Below are positions 1-10,824 of a DNA stretch of 29,212 nt, one piece after another (within the stretch, counting starts at the first letter, position 1; every line of letters begins with the position of its first letter). A program made the position numbers and the translations under genes. This stretch comes from Paraphysomonas bandaiensis (Eukaryota; Protista; Chrysophyceae): contig CBFFRP010000093.1 in the NCBI GenBank assembly GCA_965644295.1, positions 1-29,212 on the forward strand, in the 5' to 3' direction. The notes under the pieces are model-generated. The model was not told where the DNA came from. It was given only the letters and a program-made list of their open reading frames with translations, and did no database searches.

Positions 1-107
1 GGTAAAGTGATTTCACCAGGTTTCATATATGGAAAAGTTTCATATAAGTGCTTATTTGAAGTCTGTATTAATATTAGTTATAACTTAGTTGTTGTATATT
101 ATCAATT

Positions 108-1850
108 TAGACTAAACCATAGTCTGTAACCATAGTCTGTAACCAATGATATAAAGTGGAATTATTACAACACTGAGTAAACCAATCACGGTACCCCTCT
201 ATTCTATAGTTTCCTTAGATAGAGTATCAGCATGTGTGTACAGTTCGCTAGCTAACGCGTTACAGAAACTATAATAATCAATACTATTTGTATCTATCGA
301 ACGAATATTACAATACGCATGGAATGTATTTTGCAGAACACAGCCGAACGCAAACGAGCTAAACTTTCCTCTTTCGCCTAGATGCCCTCCACCACCATGC
401 CGATGAGGCCATATCCTCTCTTTAATCTGTAAATTGAATACATCACATGCTGCAAACATCTTACCATAGTCGGAGCACACAGGCACAGAATTGGTGGTAG
501 ACCTCGTAGGTGATCTATGATAAGCATTGGACAAGGCGGTATATTTCTTGCCATCCTTCGTATAAGAATGAACTATGAGTTCTTTACGCTGTTGATTCCA
601 CAGTCCATTCCACTGTCCTCGTATATTAACACCTTCACGAACTTTACGAGTGAGTGCTTGGAAGCGCTGTGGATTCACAGCCCCGATATATTTTACTTTC
701 TTCCTTGCAAGTCCCTCTCGTGCAGCTTCATCAAGATAATACGAGTCGAATACAAGAACAGTGCTACTCATTCGTGTAGAATTAAAAGAGTGTATGATTT
801 TGCCCCAGTGTTCCACTACAGCGCTGACAGGTATAGACTCTCCTAGATCAGCTATCGCATCATGCAACCACATGTCCAGCATGTATGCGTGTTTATTGGA
901 GAGCTTCACACACAACTCATACACCCACAAGCCCATTCGTTCAGGCTTCATATAAACTACTCTTATATTAGGACTATAGCCTATAAATCACTTGTTAACA
1001 ATAGTATTCAATAATTGATCAATATACACACCTGAGAAATGCAGCAACTTCTCATCGCCAGCTACAACATTGCCAATACCACGTAAAATAGATCTAAAAT
1101 TATGAGACAACTGCTTTGAATATCGACTATCAAATAAAAAGTTCGTTGTCACAATTTCCATGAATCGTATGCCCAGAGAATCAATCCTTGGATAACAATC
1201 CTTAAAGTGGTCTCGGTACCATATAAGTTGCTCACGCAATGGTCGCGAATGACGTATTACACCTCTTGGGGCATGTTGTTCTCCATAAATTCGAATCCAA
1301 ATTGCAAGAAGCTTATATATAGAACACAATGAAAGCAAAATTACTGATCCACAGTCATATGTCAAGTCGGCAGGGTCAATATCCTGGGCTATTTTCGTCA
1401 CAAGGGGTACTGTAACAAAACGCAAGAATATCTTGAGGAAGCTGGCAGTGCGAAAATTAAACGTAGGGTATCGATCTGCATCAACCGTATGAGGCAGATG
1501 GAATGACTCATTGGCCGAATCAACTGGTCTCCAACGCCCAATGATCTCTATTTCCTGAGCACGCTCTGAGCTTCTTGTCGCGTCATCTTCATCGTTGCAA
1601 AGAGAACCTGATTTGCGCTTTCGAAATGCCATGTCAAACTATGAGTGAATGGGGGATATAATGAACTTACCAGCACATTAATTTGACCTGCAATTCGCTG
1701 ACTCAACACTGTGATATGAAGTGTGAAGTGTGGATCACATTGTCTGATTTCGACTGATTTTATGACAGTTATTTTATGTATGAAAATCGACGTTATTTTC
1801 AGTTTTTTTTCTATTTTTTTCAGTATGGTTGCAGACTATGGTTTAATCTA
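108..1850 (-). mobile_element. piggyBac-like element with 27-bp TIRs, nested near the left end of the Sola-like element
   Basis: 108-134 TAGACTAAACCATAGTCTGTAACCATA is the inverted match of 1824-1850 (2 mismatches). The pair flanks a single transposase gene. ATT is present on both sides (105-107 and 1851-1853). Confidence 0.75.
199..1632 (-). CDS. piggyBac-family (PGBD-like) DDD transposase, 460 aa after splicing a 51-nt intron (981-1031)
   Basis: Splicing GTGTGT...TTATAG joins ORFs 988-1632 and 199-951 into GDEKLLHFSG-YSPNIRVVYMKPERMGLWVYELC. Further motifs VFDSYY and YGKMFAACDVFN match the piggyBac DE / DN / YN..M.GVD blocks. No C-terminal Cys-rich domain. Confidence 0.85.
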
Positions 1851-2059
1851 ATTATATATATTATTTTAAAAATATTTTACTAAAATACTGTATTATATAT
1901 TGTTACTTCTCATATAAATCTACTGTATTACTACTTATGAAAATCTCACATCAACGTAACACTACTATATATATATTATGCACAGACAACACATACACGA
2001 AGTAATAAAATGCAGACACAATATCCCTGAATTAATTACGCTTCACCGAAAACGATATT

Positions 2060-3831
2060 TTATTTGAAGTAATTCTGCAACACTAAGTTCTCGTACAAAA
2101 TATTCTTCTTTTCCGCATCATGTAATCGATGCAGTCGATCAGTTTGATCTTGCACTGTAGACATAAGCATAAAAGAATTTCGACCATCACTACAATGAAC
2201 AGCTTGTTGAGGTGCAAGAGACACACCAGTATCATCACAAGCACCAAGAGAAGCAGTACGTGCCACAGGGATAGTAGGAGGTACAGGCGGTTCGGAAACA
2301 CCAACAATAGATGCAGGCTGAGCAGAGGGATCGTGCTGTACAGGTGAGGGAGCCACTTCTCTGCTTGATACGATCTGCTTCATCTCGTCTCTCAACTCCA
2401 TACACATAGCCTGGGACTCTTTCAGTTGTTACATCAACTCTTTGACGACAGCATCCTGGTGAAGGGGAGGGGGTGGATGAGGAATACCCCCATCCTGGTG
2501 GGTGGGAGGGGATGCATGAGAAATACTTCTATCCTCAATCGTGATTACTTCGTCATCATGGTACTTCCCCTGCACAATAAAAGTCAAAAGTTAAATAAAA
2601 TATCCAAAGCATAAAAGCAGACATTTCTTACGACTTTACTCCGCTTCGGTTTCTTAGAAGAGATCTTCTCGACCAGTTCCTGCGCCTTCTTCATGGCGCA
2701 GGCCTTCTTGCGCCGCCCACACACTTTTGGCACCACTATACTGTTGTCCGAATGAACTTTCTTGGTTCTCCGGCCAGCCCCCTTTCGCTTTCCTTCAGAG
2801 GGTTCCTGGTCCCAGCCATCCGTCTCAACAACAACAAATGACCCCGTTTCATCCTTGTTTGGTCCTCTCTCCGGGACATAGGTAAAGTCATGGATTTCAA
2901 ACCAATTACCTAAGGAAGATATCAGTCTATCATGGTCCTCAAACTCCAGAGGAAGATATCTGTATTCCTTCTTAAACTTCGAGATCCCCTGTACGCGGAA
3001 CCACTGTTCCATTGTGCCATCTGCTAACGGTAGAAGCATGGCATCATACCTTGGGGCAACGCACTTGGTCCGGAGTAAGCAGCCGACGTAAAATCTCTGG
3101 CCTCTACGGTCTTCGACGATTGCACGACTTATTGACAGGTTATCCAACCTCCTGTTATAATGAGCAGACAGCAATATATAGTGATATAATAGCCCACACT
3201 TATCATGGACCTCGAGGTCAATGAATAATTTCAGCGGGGTGTTATTAGGATCACTCATAAATGGTTTGTGAACAAAACATTGCTCACACCCTGCTAACGT
3301 AACAGAGAGTGACTCTGACGAAGATTTGAAGAGTGCAACGAATGTAGATAGGTAATCTACGGCGGCCACGTCACCGTTTCCGTCTGCTGTAGCAGCATTA
3401 GCAACCACATCAGTTGCTTCAGCAACTACATCAGTAGTATCAGTAACTACATCAGTTGCATCGGCAACTACATCAGTTGCAACATCAGCCACATCAGTTG
3501 CATCGGGAACTACATCAGCTGCAACATCAGCCACATCAGTTGCATCGGGAACTACATCATTTGCATCGGCAACTACATCAGCTGCAACATCAGCCCCATG
3601 AGTGGCATCAGCAACAGAATCAGTTGCATCAGCAATCACATCATAGGGGACAACCTGAGAATCTTCATCAAAAAGTCCACGCACTTCTTCCTTGTCTACT
3701 GTGTGACACGGTTCACACAATAACTTTAGAGCCGAACATCCCTTCTCTGCGATTATAAATTGTGACCCACATCGTGAGCACTGATCAAAATCATCAGTGT
3801 CACTAGTAGAAGAATCTGAGTCACAGCTCAT
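2060..3831 (-). pseudogene. Transposon accessory gene: N-terminal CxxC...CxxC ribbon, acidic repeat, unknown globular domain, basic linker, coiled-coil tail; one premature stop
   Basis: A phase-0 intron at 2570-2631 (GTAAGA...GTGCAG) puts ORF 2584-3831 in frame with ORF 2060-2407. A single in-frame TAA at 2429-2431 interrupts ELM*QLKESQAM. Confidence 0.6.
3400..3640 (-). repeat. Coding minisatellite (21/42-bp period) encoding DATDVVA-type acidic repeats
   Basis: Repeated GCATCGG(C/G)AACTACATCAG units; the protein reads DVVADATDVVTDTTDVVAEATDVVA. Confidence 0.9.
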
Positions 3832-4312
3832 AGTTTACTATATTAATATTATATGGTCAATGCCAAATATATATTAATATAGTAATATGGTCAACGTTGT
3901 GTGTATATATGTATATATATAATGGTGTGTTAAGTTATGCATATATATTATGGTCATGATGTGCGTGTTGTAAGCACTGCTCGTGCAGTGTGGTTGCGGT
4001 GTTGTGTGATGCACACCGCGTCCTCACCACACACTCATGACGCGTGTTCGATTCTCTTGTGGGGTGCTTTTGGTCAAATTCAAATTTTTTTTGTACGTGT
4101 TTTTCTATATGTTATGCTGCGCTTGATCTGTGGGGTGATCTGAGAGCATATTTGAAAATGCACTTCACTCACAATCATTCATATCATCATTATTATCACA
4201 CACACTACCACACTAACACAACACAGTAGCTCACAACACTAATAAGTTCTTCGAAGGTAATCACATTCATTTCTTGTAAATCTCTGTATGCGCTGTACTG
4301 CCTCTCAACACC

Positions 4313-5466
4313 ATAGTGTATGTTACGCTTTGCCCTGGCTCATAATCTGCTCCGTATGGTTCAGCATGTGCATGTGATGGCATCTGGTTCATACTTGTAT
4401 ATGTATGACTGTATATAGCGAATTAGAAATGCATCTAGCAGAGTGTGAGTCATTCTTTTGCCCCTGCACAAACTCTGCAACCGGCAGCTGAACGGGGTTT
4501 CACTGCAGGATGTAGCTTGTGCTGAGCGATGGCAATGAATGTTCACTTGTATAATAGTGTATGTTACGCTTTGCCCTGGCACATATTCTGCTCCATATGG
4601 CCATATGGTTCAGCATGTGCATGTGATGGCATCGGTTTCATACCGTATATGTATGGCAGTATAGCTAGAAAAGCATGTATTTTTGTACGTGATGTGATTC
4701 ATTTTTTTGCCCCTGCACAAACTCTGCAACCGGCAGCTGAACGGGGTTTCACTGCAGGATGTAGCTTGTGCTGAGCGATGGCAATGAATGTTCACTTGTA
4801 TAATAGTGTATGTTACGCTTTGCCCTGGCACATATTCTGCTCCATATGGCCATATGGTTCAGCATGTGCATGTGATGGCATCGGTTTCATACCGTATATG
4901 TATGGCAGTATAGCTAGAAAAGCATGTATTTTTGTACGTGATGTGATTCATTTTTTTGCCCCTGCACAAACTCTGCAACCGGCAGCTGAACGGGGTTTCA
5001 CTGCAGGATGTAGCTTGTGCTGAGCGATGGCAATGAATGTTCACTTGTATAATAGTGTATGTTACGCTTTGCCCTGGCACATATTCTGCTCCATATGGCC
5101 ATATGGTTCAGCATGTGCATGTGATGGCATCGGTTTCATACCGTATATGTATGGCAGTATAGCTAGAAAAGCATGTATTTTTGTACGTGATGTGATTCAT
5201 TTTTTTGCCCCTGCACAAACTCTGCAACCGGCAGCTGAACGGAGATTCACTGCAGGATGTAGCTTGTGCTGAGCGATGGCATTAAAAGTTTCACCTGTAT
5301 ATAAGTGTATGTTACGCTTTGCCCTGGCACATATTCTGCTCCATATGGCCATATGGTTCAGCATGTGCATGTGATGGCATCGGTTTCATACCGTGTATGT
5401 ATGGCAGTATAGCTAGAAAAGCATGTATTTTTGCACGTGGTGTGATTCACTTTTTTGCCCCTGCAC
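4313..5466. repeat. Tandem array of ~4.7 copies of a 249-bp unit
   Basis: Unit starts (ATAGTGTATGTTACGCTTTGCCCTGGC) at 4313, 4554, 4803, 5052 and ~5302. Units 2 and 3 appear identical; the outer units are diverged or truncated. Confidence 0.97.
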
Positions 5467-5505
5467 GAATAATTCCTTACTTCTTGTATATATTATTATG
5501 TAGTT

Positions 5506-8391
5506 ATGAAAGAACCGTTAGCCCTCTTAAATACATACAGCTCTTCTTGCTGCTGTATCATGTGCATGATGACATGTGCATGTGACGGTTGCTACTTGTA
5601 TCGCAACCGCGATCCAAGTGCAGCTTTGATAGCCAACCGGCTGCGCATAGTCTGTCTGGGAGAAATCCGTCGCCTCAATCGGGACGAGAAGAGGCTATAC
5701 CTGCTTAACAAATTCCGCACCTTCCAGGTAAATTTAAATGTTGATTCAATATACATATTTCAATATTCAATAGTAATATCTCGTTTGTATTTAATAGGTG
5801 CGGGTCACGAAGTACAAGAAGTATTAGTTTAGCATTGTGGTGGGGGAGGGGGATAATATGCACCTAGTGTGCCGTATGGGGTTCTGTTGTGCGTATGCGG
5901 TGTCCCATTGGTACGTGGACAACTTAATTTGTCGACTAAAACGAAGGGACATGAACTCTCTGACCGAGTTATCTACTAGCCCCCGGGCTATCCTATGTGA
6001 AGTATCGGACAAAAAGCTCATTGGGTTTGCGTCCAGATTTGGTATAAACTTAAATGTGGAACAGTTGGGTGCCCTCCGAATGTCAGATTCCGAACAGTCC
6101 GCTGTGTGTGCTGCGTGGATGACCTACTATTTTTCACTGGTGGGTGATCAAGTCCCCGACTCTGACTCGGAGATTCACCTCGAGCCCATTCCTAAGAAGA
6201 ATGTGTACTCGGAGTACCGCTTTGACATGGAACAGATTAGTGAGATACCACTTCAGCTTCAGACATTCCTGCAGATATGGAAGAAGATTTTCTCGTACGT
6301 CAAGGTTCGGAAATATAAGCAGAGTTGTGGGCATTGCAATACTTGTGCCATGCTTTCGGATAAGCGTCGCCAGTTCAGAGATCGAAGGGGGCGGGAGGAG
6401 ATTACGAATCTTTACGCCCTACACCGTCTAAGTACTATGCAGGAACGCCGTCGGTACTACTCCAGACGACTTGAAGCACAGCTCCCCCCACAGTTAGTAC
6501 TGTCCACCATTTCAGATGGTATGCAGCAAAATCATTGTATGCTTCCCTGGTTTGGACATAATAAGATGCCTGCCATCCACATCAAACAACACTTACAGGG
6601 TGTGTTGATGCATGGCAAAAATATGACAATATACAGGACTTTTGCCAATGTTGGTGGTGGTGCCAACCTTGCCATACATACATGGCTATTAAGTCTGGAT
6701 GAGCTACACCAGAAGGGAGAGTTGCCAAAGGTCCTCTATCATCAGATTGATGGTGGTTCAGAGAATGCTAACAAGGAAATGTATGCCATTTGTGAGCTGC
6801 TAGTAGCTTCCGGGCTTGTCGACAAGGTTGTCTTAACAAGACTTCCTGTCGGGCATACGCATGAAGACATTGATGCAAACTTTGCCCTTATATGGAGAAT
6901 GCTGCGTGATGAATACATCTGTACTCCCTCGGAATTTTCTACTCTGATTTATAGAGCATTGAAGAAGAAAGTTGAAGTTTCAGTGATAGACTTATTTGTC
7001 CTACCTGATTATTGCAAGATTTTGGAAGGGTGCATTGATGTAGATATCGGCCGCTTCGCAAAGGAGGAGTGGACCCAACTGCAGTTCACGTTTGAGAGGG
7101 TGGTCACTCCTGCCGAGTTGACTGAACATCCTCTTGGCGTGAAGACATCATATCGGGCATATGCCTCAGAGGAATACATCGAAATTGTCGAGGACACTGA
7201 CCAGCAGTCTCTCTGTGGCCTCGTTGCTCAACTTTGTGAAGTGGAGAGTTATCCTCTCCCTAGTGAAAAGCCCTTGAACTTCTTGAAGAATCTTCCAAGC
7301 GGTGACTTTTCCCCAGCCCCCTTCATAGCTGGATCTTTTGAGTTAACTTCAGCTCTGTGCAAGAAAATGATAGAACAATATTCAACGCATAAGCCGAAGG
7401 TGGCCGAGGAATGGAAAGAGTGGCTGGATATTTCTCCCAAGAGTAATAGTGCTCAAGATTTTGTCACCGAAATTGGTGGAATATTTATTCCACTAAGAGA
7501 TGTCCTATTCAGTGGGACTGGAGTGTCCGATTTTGAAGTGGAATGCAGACATAGAGGAGTACGCGGAGGGCTATATGGATCCCATGCAGACGGAATTAGG
7601 AGGGTCAAGGCTACGGCTTGTGTTCTACACAACGAGAACAAAACTTCCGGCGCAAGGAAGATACCCCCACGAGTTGTCGTCCGGAATTGTGATGGTTCTA
7701 CACCCACCGATATGGTCGGAGTCTTGCCCAATGTATACCCCGGCAGAGAAGAGCAGCGTGCGGCGAGGAAGAAGACAAATGTTGAAAGAAAAGAAGCACA
7801 TGCAAAGAAGGCGAGGCTTGATGCCAGGAGGAGGGAGGAAGGCTGGGATTGTGGTGATATAATCGTCAATGACTCAGACGATAGTAATCAATCTGGTATG
7901 TTATTGTGTTGTAGATATTATATTATTATGCCATGTTTATATCTGTACAATATCAGGACAAGAGGTGGAGTCATCATCGTCTGATGACGATGGTAACCCC
8001 TCTATCACGTATTCTCCTGGGGACGAAATTGTTACTGTGACTAGGATGCGTGGTATTGTCCATGCTGTCAATGATGATGGTACCTATCATCTTGTTTACA
8101 AAAGCAAGAAGAGATGTGGTGCCACCAGGGAGGATAAGTCAGTGCGCTCCAAATACTTCTCGCTTGCATCTGGTATACTTTATGTATATGCTTGTTTGTG
8201 TACTGTACCTAATATTGAATATAGCCCACCAGGATAAGCCTCATAATATTCCCTCCAGTAAAAGAGACAATATTCCGAGGTGGAGATATATCCAGGAACC
8301 CACTAAGGAGTGGGTAGACACAGGTGCAGTTGATTCTGCTTCTATTATTACTGGTAAACGTACCAGAAGTTCAGTTGATTATCGCTTGTAA
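5506..8391 (+). CDS. Sola1/DUF7869-like DDD transposase (~890-900 aa, 4 exons) with C-terminal Tudor-like domain and CHZ-like motif
   Basis: Motifs CACDGC, VCRMGF, FLQIWKK..VKVRKYK..GHCNTC, ISDGMQQ, QIDGGSENANK and VGHTHEDIDANF. Frame-preserving GT-AG introns at 5728-5797 (or 5728-5827), 7896-7956 and 8173-8224. There is an in-frame TAG at 5825-5827 unless it serves as the splice acceptor. Confidence 0.78.
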
Positions 8392-8646
8392 GTATAGATA
8401 GCACTTTGTAATATATATAATAGTGCTATCTATAGTATGCATGTATTAACCGTTACATTAACCGTTACATTCTCACTTTTTGGACCTGTAACTAATATAA
8501 AACTTATTAAATGTCTCCAAAAACAGGTTCTCTTTACACCTACTACATTACTTATTGCAAAACATATAAAAAACACAACTTAAATCGACATTTTCAAAAT
8601 TTCACCAGGTTTAGAGCGCTTCTCCAGGTTTGTTCATCACATCAAC

Positions 8647-9552
8647 TTTAGGTGACGCATAAGGACTGGTGCTTGGTCGGTAGAAATATTTATTCATTCT
8701 CTGAAACTCCTCCTTAGTTTTCTGATACAACGCAGGTGGAATCCTCCTCATATTCCTGGGCTTAATACGATCGGGAATACTATTCTTGGTCTGTAATCTC
8801 AATGGTTTAACATGTTGAATACCTTTCCAATCACAGGGCACAAACACATCAATTGCCTCCTCCTTTAGGAATTGAACCACATCAGTCGCACTAGCAAATT
8901 CCGAATTAACTCTAGACAACTCTCTTGCTTTCGCAACTGACACTTCCAGAAAATTCAAAATTCCTCCAAAACTACAAGGCTCTGGTATTAGGTCATCCTC
9001 CTCAGCACATTGATTAACTGGATTCTCCCATGGTTGTATAACTGAACCGGACACAATATAATTCTTCAGTTCCTCAACATCATCACTAACAACTGCCAAC
9101 TGAGACAGCAAATTATTTGAATCATTACTCGCTGATTTAATCATTTTGATAAATAATTCACTGAAATGTTCACATATTGTAGGCAATCCGATAATGATAT
9201 CCTTTGTCATTCCTTTCAAAATATACAGTTTAACCCATGCTCCGTACTCCTTATCATGATCTTTGAATACAATTTTCACTGGTACATATCCAGGTATGAC
9301 TACCTCCTGTCCATTTGCTACTCTCACTATTAATTTATTATAAATGACATCCTTTTCCAAAAAACGTTCATATCTCTTGTAAAACTTATCCGATATAAAA
9401 TTATTCGAACTGGCACCCGAATCAAACAAAACGATATCGACATCAATCTCTTCACTATCACTATTTACAATGACACCACAACGATGAGCAGCAGCTCTAA
9501 ACTCCTTGCATGAAAATTGATTCAAGTTCACAACTGCTGTTAACACCTCTAG
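8647..9552 (-). pseudogene. Gypsy pol fragment: aspartic protease and RT N-terminus, truncated by the DNA transposon
   Basis: LFDSGA, VRVANGQ, DIIIGLPTI and PSTSPYASP, followed by unrelated terminal sequence. Confidence 0.85.
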
Positions 9553-10824
9553 TCACAAATCATCATCGTTATCATCATAGTCAATTTCTTCGCCACTACC
9601 ACCACTATCCGTATCTGCTTCTGCTCTCAAGTGACTCAACAATTTGACTTTGGGTTGATGTTTACCAGTTCCCGGGATTTTCCTAAAATGACCTGGATTA
9701 GACGACTGATTCTTCTGTGGAGGCGTATTAAAAGACGGTTTTGGTATCAAACTGAATCCTAATCGAGAACCCATCTTCTTAAAAGCTTCATTAAGAATTA
9801 CCTTCTTATCATGTGAAAATTTACAATTCTTCTCTTTGCAACCACCTTCCTGAGTCATCTGTCTATAACATGGTGACTGTTCCATATCTTTCACAACTAA
9901 GACACTGTTTTCCTCCTCACTGGGATTATCCTTATCACTACTTCTTTCAAAAGATGAATCATCTGCTCCTTCTGCTGAATTCACAGTTTTCACATCCCCT
10001 TTCTTCTTAAAATTAAAGCGGAACCTCCGTTTAAACTGCTGGTGCTTCTCGTCTAACTCTCTCGTAATCTTCAAATGACTAAAGAACTCAGCAAGAAATG
10101 CTTGTACAGAGGCAAAATTCTCCACTTTCAGAAGTCTTCTCATAGTATCCTTCATGCTAAATGGAATCAACCTCATGAAAGTCTCCAGAGAACCCCCATT
10201 CTTAATTGTTACTAATGGAATACTTTCATACAAACCATTACTTTTGCACGCATCAACCAAGAATTCATAACGCTGTGTAAACTTTGTTTCAAGAATGCAT
10301 AACTCCTCATCAACTCTCTTAAAATCCTCCAACTTATCCATATACACTTGTTGGTACGCAGTGCAAGATTTTAACAACATATCATTAAATGCGACTACAT
10401 CCAGTGGCCTGATATCATGTTTTACTGCAGACATTATATCAGTTATCGAAGCATCATTACAACTCAAAGTAGTTGGATACACATGAGGAAATAACCCCAT
10501 TAAAGTATGCTTCACAGTCTCTTTGGCTCTACCCTTGATCAATATGAATACTGAAGGAATTGGCTGATCATAATTGCACTTCTCAAACTCAGCTATATCC
10601 TCAAGAAACCGCATGAACTTATCCAAATCGATTTCCGAAAGCGAAATCGTTCTCTTATATGACTTGTCCTCAGTTGTCAACATAATCTTCTTGACTTGCC
10701 TCTTCTCTGCTTCAGCAACCGCTTCCTGTACCGTTTGTAGCGTTTGTCTCTTATCCTGACGGGGTTGCACTATACTGCTCTCCTCCAAAATACTCTGAGT
10801 AGCATTTCTAACTCCCTGTCGAAT
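9553..10824 (-). pseudogene. Gypsy gag, C-terminal part, with CCCH zinc finger
   Basis: ORF 9553-10788 lies directly upstream of and in frame with the protease; it contains CYRQMTQEGGCKEKNCKFSH. Confidence 0.75.

Follow-up and report, generated by a model that had tools for sequence, protein, structure and literature searches.

The first 8648 bp of a 29,212-nucleotide window from Paraphysomonas bandaiensis (contig CBFFRP010000093.1, positions 1 to 29,212 of the forward strand; "the window" denotes this whole stretch) probably represent a copy, inactivated not long ago, of a young and autonomous DNA transposon of the cut-and-paste type with two genes, one for a DDD-type transposase and one for a helper protein. 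We assign a probability of about 0.65 to this reading, including the roles that are proposed below for the single components. The window is the start of the contig (C93 in our numbering) in a 62.5-Mb eukaryotic assembly, and its first 9 kb were compared with the whole genome. An initial annotation had described positions 1-8646 as one transposon, inserted in a Gypsy reverse transcriptase (RT) gene, with a spliced ~900-aa DDD transposase on the plus strand, a divergent ~570-codon accessory gene on the minus strand, a 249-bp array between the two genes and motif-rich ends. Each of these components was recovered in our analysis, as was the linkage of both genes and the array within common termini. 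The span was right in that it forms one unit, but the right end lies at 8648, the left end is cut off by the contig start and the segment 108-1849 is foreign.

Extent, Termini and Target Site of the Element

Comparison of the first 9 kb with the genome revealed a single repeated unit with its right border at 8648. In the copy on contig C132 and in further copies, position 107 of the window abuts position 1850 directly and 108-1849 is missing; the internal segment 1850-2062, which lies downstream of the helper gene, is contiguous there with the left subterminal region (1-107). Seven other copies extend the left end by 24 bp beyond window position 1 before unrelated flanks begin. The contig start therefore truncates the left terminal repeat by 24 bp, and the initial part of that repeat (AAGTCGGTGTGATCATGAAACCTG...) is off the contig. 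The right subterminal region and the right terminal repeat (...CCAGGTTTGTTCATCACATCAACTT) occupy 8392-8648; the right end, ...CATCACATCAACTT, is common to 12 copies, whose flanks diverge beyond it. The terminal inverted repeats (TIRs) are imperfect and ~25 bp long (AAGT...ACTT), with AAGTCGGTGTGATCATGAAACCTGG on the left and AAGTTGATGTGATGAACAAACCTGG on the right, and the motif AAACCTGG/CCAGGTTT is present twice near each end of the element. Full and internally deleted copies have both termini in common. The sister copies are 99.5-99.9% identical, which indicates that the element is young.

Perfect 3-bp target duplications (AAT, TTG, ATA, TTT, and TTA) were found in all five young copies for which both flanks were present, and a 4-bp reading failed in all five. 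The older gene-less relative on C660 fits TTAA better, which we took as decay or chance.

A Gypsy copy on C186 (97% identical) runs uninterrupted and provides the empty site, ...ACAACGA TAG GTGACG; its minus-strand open reading frame (ORF) at this place reads SPYASPIVVAPK, the start of RT. On the basis of this copy, we concluded that the transposon sits at the RT start of a Gypsy element with the target triplet TAG, the right-hand copy of which is found at 8649-8651. The gag and protease ORFs of the interrupted Gypsy element (weak RVP_2 match; window 8611-10788, minus strand) are broken by the transposon at the protease-RT border, and this Gypsy element has at least four other copies with 93-97% identity.

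Rearranged copies of the transposon were also observed. C638 and C180 (L044/L045) are derived by deletion: they retain an intact helper gene, to which the 3' part of the transposase gene is directly joined. The C400 copy (L013 3440-5383) carries the window region 3659-4649 twice, as an inverted duplication, has lost the helper gene, and ends beside CCCTAA telomere-type repeats.

The Transposase Gene and Its Product

The transposase gene is composed of four plus-strand exons with GT..AG introns and has a coding length of 2703 nt (900 codons plus the stop). Exon 1 (5506-5727) encodes a Cys-rich N-terminus (CCCxxC..C.C..C), in agreement with the N-termini of the homologs P0007 and P0016. Exon 2 (5798-7895) encodes a winged-helix region, the RNase H-like DDD core and a C-terminal domain. 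The two small exons, recognized by their splice sites, encode an acidic stretch followed by a short beta-rich segment (exon 3, 7957-8172; kept in P0002 and P0007) and a terminal WVDxGAV..S..ITGKRxR motif that is conserved in homologs (exon 4, 8225-8391). Exon 4 terminates in WVDTGAVDSASIITGKRTRSS, which the homologs keep. Four full-length homologs from public data (P0002, P0007, P0009, and P0016) support both the Cys-rich N-terminus and the small C-terminal exons, and all four carry the segment VRVT.KKYKF that spans the first splice.

In Pfam searches that were run exon by exon, the main exon matched DUF7869 (PF25273) with 102.3 bits and an E-value of 3.3e-29 (cut-off 26). The transposase has more than 230 relatives, none of them named, and PF25273 was present in 120 of 120 homologs among the matches listed. 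The residues D227, D305, D344, and D346 (numbering of ORF 5837-7984) are invariant in a 14-sequence alignment. The AlphaFold model of the transposase (pLDDT 72) displays an RNase H-like core, b1-b2-b3-a1-b4-a2-b5-a3, without an insertion domain, and among solved structures it is closest to retroviral integrases and Mos1 (Z 7.9-8.3). Over residues 83-161 the model resembles the RFX-type winged helix of RFX5 (Z 7.0, 27% identity); weak Pfam RFX matches of the homologs agree with this likeness.

In the C-terminal tail, exon 3 has no Pfam family, exon 4 reached only E 0.14 against the Pfam family CHZ (12 bits, below the cut-off of 23.3), and a Tudor domain had no support beyond the sequence pattern. 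The Protein Data Bank (PDB) matches of exon 3 to designed propellers were rejected as an artefact of a short repeated 'AINPDGT'-like string. A "chromatin tail" of the transposase is a hypothesis drawn from the sequence pattern. Foldseek returned only generic or insignificant rows for the transposase model. Sequence searches of NCBIfam and the PDB with a profile of the transposase yielded nothing useful, and neither did an Atlas search with DUF7869 excluded or a literature search for the motif HTHEDID; our literature search found no mention of DUF7869.

The Helper Gene and Its Linkage to the Transposase

The helper gene is divergent from the transposase gene and encodes ~569 codons in two minus-strand exons. 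Exon 1 (3831-2632; 400 codons) was defined by its ORF and by alignments A1-A3. The 62-nt intron (2570-2631, minus strand; GTAAGA...TGCAG) was placed by its splice sites, and exon 2 (2569-2063), which begins at the acceptor TGCAG/GGG, encodes a proline-rich part and then a helical tail. In exon 1 the order is an acidic N-terminus, a CxxC...CxxC zinc ribbon, an acidic 7-residue repeat, a conserved domain and a basic tail. The acidic repeat, of DATDVVA type, is encoded by a 21-bp coding repeat of 11.9 units (3395-3643, minus strand), detected by repeat scan and ORF. The conserved domain (~175 aa) includes the motifs LRTKC, PRYD, and GPNKDE. Its ratio of nonsynonymous to synonymous substitution rates (dN/dS) is 0.29 against the C164 family, a value that indicates purifying selection on the domain; deeper pairs have saturated synonymous sites. 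When 1.84 billion representative proteins were searched by profile, only 73 representatives related to the helper were recovered. Neither an OTU fold nor a Myb-like identity, both considered for a helper of this kind, applies to the window helper, as judged by Pfam and by structure comparison.

In this genome, at least eight diverged families (C139, C538, C656, C345, C298, C204, C351, and C546) have the helper gene next to a transposase gene, and the two genes are divergent in these families wherever both strands were read. Identities to the window proteins were 49% (helper) and 68% (transposase) in family C139, 39 and 63% in C538, 34 and 52% in C656, and 30 and 42% in C298. Across families, helper identity falls from 49 to 28% where that of the transposase falls from 68 to about 40%, and this parallel drop argues for joint descent rather than repeated capture. 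All clear helper matches that we inspected in the genome either neighbour a transposase gene or belong to copies that are decayed, rearranged or deleted, and none of them was at a recognisable single-copy host locus.

The Intergenic Tandem Array

The repeat scan placed the 249-bp tandem array at 4313-5466 (plus strand), with 4.7 units and 94% matches; it ends 40 bp upstream of the transposase ATG. The 8-mer CCTGGCAC occurs once in each of units 2-5 (4 occurrences) and is missing from the first, divergent unit. Among copies that are 99.5-99.9% identical the number of units is 4.7, 2.7, or about 1.7.

Arrays are located between both genes in other families as well, as 259 bp x 3 in C139, 169 bp x 4.5 in C538 and 68 bp x 4-10 in C37, C160, and C661. 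In the metagenome locus L056, a 161-bp array lies directly upstream of a transposase that is 52% identical. CCTGGCAC was found 4, 6, and 10 times, in a single orientation, in the arrays of the window, C139, and L056, respectively. Three gene-less 4.5-kb derivatives (C660, C351, and C433) have an array that is 97% identical and ends that are only 82% identical. The genome comparison of the first 9 kb showed no copy of the array except in elements of this kind. The array also contains a TIR-like motif, TGTGAT, which we dismissed because other families lack it in theirs. Since arrays recur in position, CCTGGCAC is conserved and the array is kept in gene-less derivatives, we favour a cis role of the array in a shared promoter, as far as sequence comparison can suggest one.

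State of the Window Copy and Its Sisters

Both genes of the window copy carry a private stop codon. In transposase exon 2, TAG at 5825-5827 replaces the AAG that is found in C346, C400, and C132. In helper exon 2, TAA at 2429-2431 replaces the CAA of 11 other loci, and the helper homolog P0122 (70% identical) reads through this position with Q. The copy is close to its sisters: 4 of 3143 bases differ from C346 in the transposase region, and one base and one gap from C132 in the helper region. Two of the ~5 substitutions relative to the sisters are nonsense changes, one per gene, which is beyond random expectation (a few percent by a rough estimate). Judged by the two stop codons and the nested insertion at 108-1849, the window copy is unable to make either full protein and is dead. 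C132 keeps both sense codons and has a 1551-bp transposon in transposase intron 1. This insert (L011 7077-8627; C132:151076-152626) has the ends AGCAAACT...AGTTTGCT and lies 6 bp before the acceptor.

Relatives Outside This Genome

When metagenomes were scanned with the profile of the transposase, 80 loci were recovered, mostly short, among which a clear helper homolog was present only in L055 and L056 (E 1e-85 to 1e-94). Distant metagenome lineages often have an unrelated minus-strand ORF upstream of the transposase. In L056, the ORF upstream of the array (5176-6024, minus strand) looks 2OG-Fe(II) oxygenase-like by eye (HKD...H...R); it had no Pfam match at E 0.01.

In a scan of prokaryotic genomes, DUF7869 genes were found mainly on short contigs of binned genomes. 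A decayed DUF7869-like gene is present on a 733-kb Nitrospirales contig (L148 3001-4314; 32% identity, E 2e-14), and an intact 703-aa DUF7869 ORF on a 3.2-kb contig binned as Limnohabitans (L149 1075-3186). These genes may be prokaryotic relatives or binning errors.

Superfamily Placement

The catalytic core was compared by eye only, with the core segments in supplementary file 5 of Majorek et al. (2014) (PMC3985635). The blocks of the window transposase are SDGMQQNHCMLP, ANLAIHTWLL, IDGGSENAN, and PVGHTHEDID. In the segments of that file, Sola1-1_AP and XP_003249065 have FDLEKVLTTP and FDLQQCLPTP as first blocks, SNEIGTCLL and ANDISSCLF as second blocks, and YSDNCGGQNRN and YSDCCPGQNKN, then ERGHT and VPGHS, as later blocks. 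By eye, the blocks D-x-QQ..LP, N..I...LL, D..GG.N.N, and GH(T/S) appear to be common to the window transposase and the Sola1 reference cores, whereas Zator-1_HM has only a DGGPDEN-like second block in common with it.

The target duplication gives a different picture. Sola elements are described as having DDD transposases and 4-bp duplications, AWWT in Sola1 and Sola2 (PMC3845634; PMC3627910), and Zator and ISAzo13 are stated to duplicate 3 bp (PMC10045372; PMC12905397). With its 3-bp duplications the window element resembles Zator/ISAzo13. PF07592 (DDE_Tnp_ISAZ013) did not match the transposase at E up to 10, and genome-wide nothing exceeded its cut-off; the top hit, 15.7 bits, was at an unrelated place. 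The designation "Sola1-like" in the initial annotation is thus consistent with the catalytic motif blocks, which match published Sola1 cores by eye, and at odds with the duplication of 3 rather than 4 bp. On these sequence features, we lean towards a Sola1-like transposase in an element that fails the Sola duplication rule.

Alternative Explanations

Several observations weigh against a two-gene transposon with the component roles proposed here. The splice sites of both genes were inferred from sequence and homologs. The 3-bp duplication conflicts with membership in Sola, for which 4 bp (AWWT) is the criterion. The helper has no Pfam family in a scan at E up to 10, and the model of its conserved domain (pLDDT 79) gave no significant fold match (best Foldseek E 0.17, best VIA Z 4.6), so that any biochemical role we suggest for it is a guess from sequence. 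Among the weak structural matches, small SH3-like barrels over residues 77-136 predominate (Tudor, BAH, chromo, MazF, and CarD) and serve as a lead only. In L055 and L056, the only long contigs from metagenomes that carry the two genes, the helper gene is downstream of the transposase gene and convergent with it, at the contig edge, which leaves the layout outside this genome unsettled. That the helper is a passenger, a captured host gene without a role in transposition or element regulation, would fit with its lack of a recognisable domain, with the distant metagenome DUF7869 lineages that have no detectable helper homolog upstream, and with the multiplication of internally deleted copies and gene-less derivatives. 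We consider it very unlikely in view of the pairing kept through parallel divergence in at least eight families, the purifying selection at dN/dS 0.29 and the absence of single-copy host loci among the clear matches inspected; the gene-less derivatives are mobilisable in trans and are therefore no argument against a helper role.

It is less improbable, though still doubtful, that the 249-bp array is a neutral, functionless minisatellite in a recombination-prone intergenic region. Among near-identical copies the unit number varies between 1.7 and 4.7, and sequence conservation of the array is limited to the single 8-mer CCTGGCAC, both as in a neutral minisatellite and both further points against our reading. 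The period and sequence also change by family (249, 259, 169, 161, and 68 bp), and overlaps between array and termini are near chance level. Against neutrality, most of the families examined have an array in this position, CCTGGCAC is conserved, always in one orientation, in three arrays that accompany transposases of only 52-68% identity, and the array is the best-conserved part of the gene-less derivatives. A further alternative, which appears unlikely to us, assigns the element to the Zator/ISAzo13 type instead of Sola1, with DUF7869 as a eukaryotic branch of that group. It is in line with the 3-bp duplications (PMC10045372; PMC12905397), with the likeness of the second catalytic block, IDGGSEN, to the DGGPDEN of Zator, with the compact integrase/mariner-like core and with an Atlas cluster in which 95% of the members have DUF7869 and 11% PF07592. 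On the other side are the missing PF07592 match and the first and third catalytic blocks (D-x-QQ..LP and GH[T/S]), which match Sola1 and not the DDK..G and APG/S.S of Zator, in a motif comparison made by eye only. Quite unlikely, in our estimate, is the more far-reaching idea of a distinct, undescribed lineage between Sola1 and Zator, characterised by DUF7869 and 3-bp duplications, in which an obligatory helper, with a fold so far absent from solved structures, binds the CCTGGCAC promoter array and so controls expression, targeting or escape from silencing.

Proposed Mechanism and Comparison with Known Systems

In the two-gene transposon that we prefer, the transposase would bind the subterminal AAACCTGG motifs with two N-terminal regions, the Cys-rich one and the RFX-like winged helix, and would then excise the element and reinsert it with a 3-bp staggered cut. 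The helper, with its putative zinc ribbon, beta-rich domain and nuclear-localisation-like basic tail, would be a partner required in trans, most likely as a cofactor that binds DNA or chromatin, on the pattern of other two-gene transposons. The array may act as a reiterated cis-regulatory or binding platform of CCTGGCAC sites within a promoter region that both genes would share, immediately upstream of the transposase.

With the Sola1 group (Bao et al., 2009, as cited in PMC4455052, PMC3845634, and PMC3985635) the element shares a DDD-type transposase, whose four core blocks look similar by eye to those of Sola1-1_AP and XP_003249065, terminal inverted repeats and a large size; a mean of 5.4 kb is given for bivalves in PMC10294476. 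It differs from Sola1 in the target duplication (Sola 4 bp, AWWT for Sola1; window element 3 bp, with termini AAGT...ACTT) and in its conserved second gene and intergenic array, neither of which we found reported for Sola1. Zator and ISAzo13 (TP36, PF07592) are similar in the 3-bp duplication, the compact DDE/D core without an insertion domain and the DGG..EN after the second aspartate; they differ in that the window transposase has no PF07592 match and has other first and third catalytic blocks, and Zator is described as single-gene.

The initial annotation had stated that Sola elements are usually described as single-ORF transposons. This is too strong, as two-gene Sola2-Fanzor elements of dictyostelids have been published (PMC3627910). 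They resemble the window element in that a Sola-type transposon carries a second protein-coding gene, but this gene is Fanzor1 (TnpB-like) and the target duplication is 4 bp (AWWT) (PMC3627910). In supplementary file 3 of that paper, none of the strings GHTH, HTHED, and IDGG is found more than once, and only Fanzor entries contain them; the Sola2 transposases therefore lack them.

PIF/Harbinger, CACTA and VANDAL with its VANC proteins are alike in outline, with a transposase, a second element-encoded protein and repeated motifs, and Harbinger and CACTA make 3-bp duplications as the window element does. They have no homology with it, CACTA termini are absent, and neither gene matched DDE_Tnp_4, Plant_tran, Transposase_21 or Myb in Pfam at E up to 10. 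In VANDAL/VANC systems the accessory protein binds repeated motifs specific to the element and removes silencing. The initial annotation proposed, by loose analogy with them, that helper and array act in targeting, regulation or anti-silencing; this putative role gained no support from our analysis, in which the helper gave no informative domain or fold match.

To our knowledge, Sola-type transposons are poorly studied, and we know of no transposition mechanism or partner protein for them. A young multi-copy lineage with near-intact sisters makes it possible to ask what a second protein and reiterated cis sites do for a DDD transposase, and it bears on a possible relationship between Sola1 and Zator/ISAzo13. 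It also matters for genome annotation, as helper and transposase are both 'hypothetical' in public data at present.

The Nested Element at 108-1849

The 1742-bp segment at 108-1849 (minus strand) is an unrelated, nested transposon with the terminal repeats TAGACTAAACCATAG, absent from other copies of the host element. More than 30 separate copies of it were found in the genome, at 91-100% identity, with the 3-bp duplications ATT, AGC, and AAT. The piggyBac-like identity considered for it was discarded, as it had no Pfam support and the duplications are 3 bp, not TTAA. The nested element has two minus-strand ORFs, at 988-1632 and 199-951 (214 and 250 aa). Neither has a Pfam family (the top match was DDE_Tnp_1, at E 0.09), and they may encode an unclassified DDE transposase.

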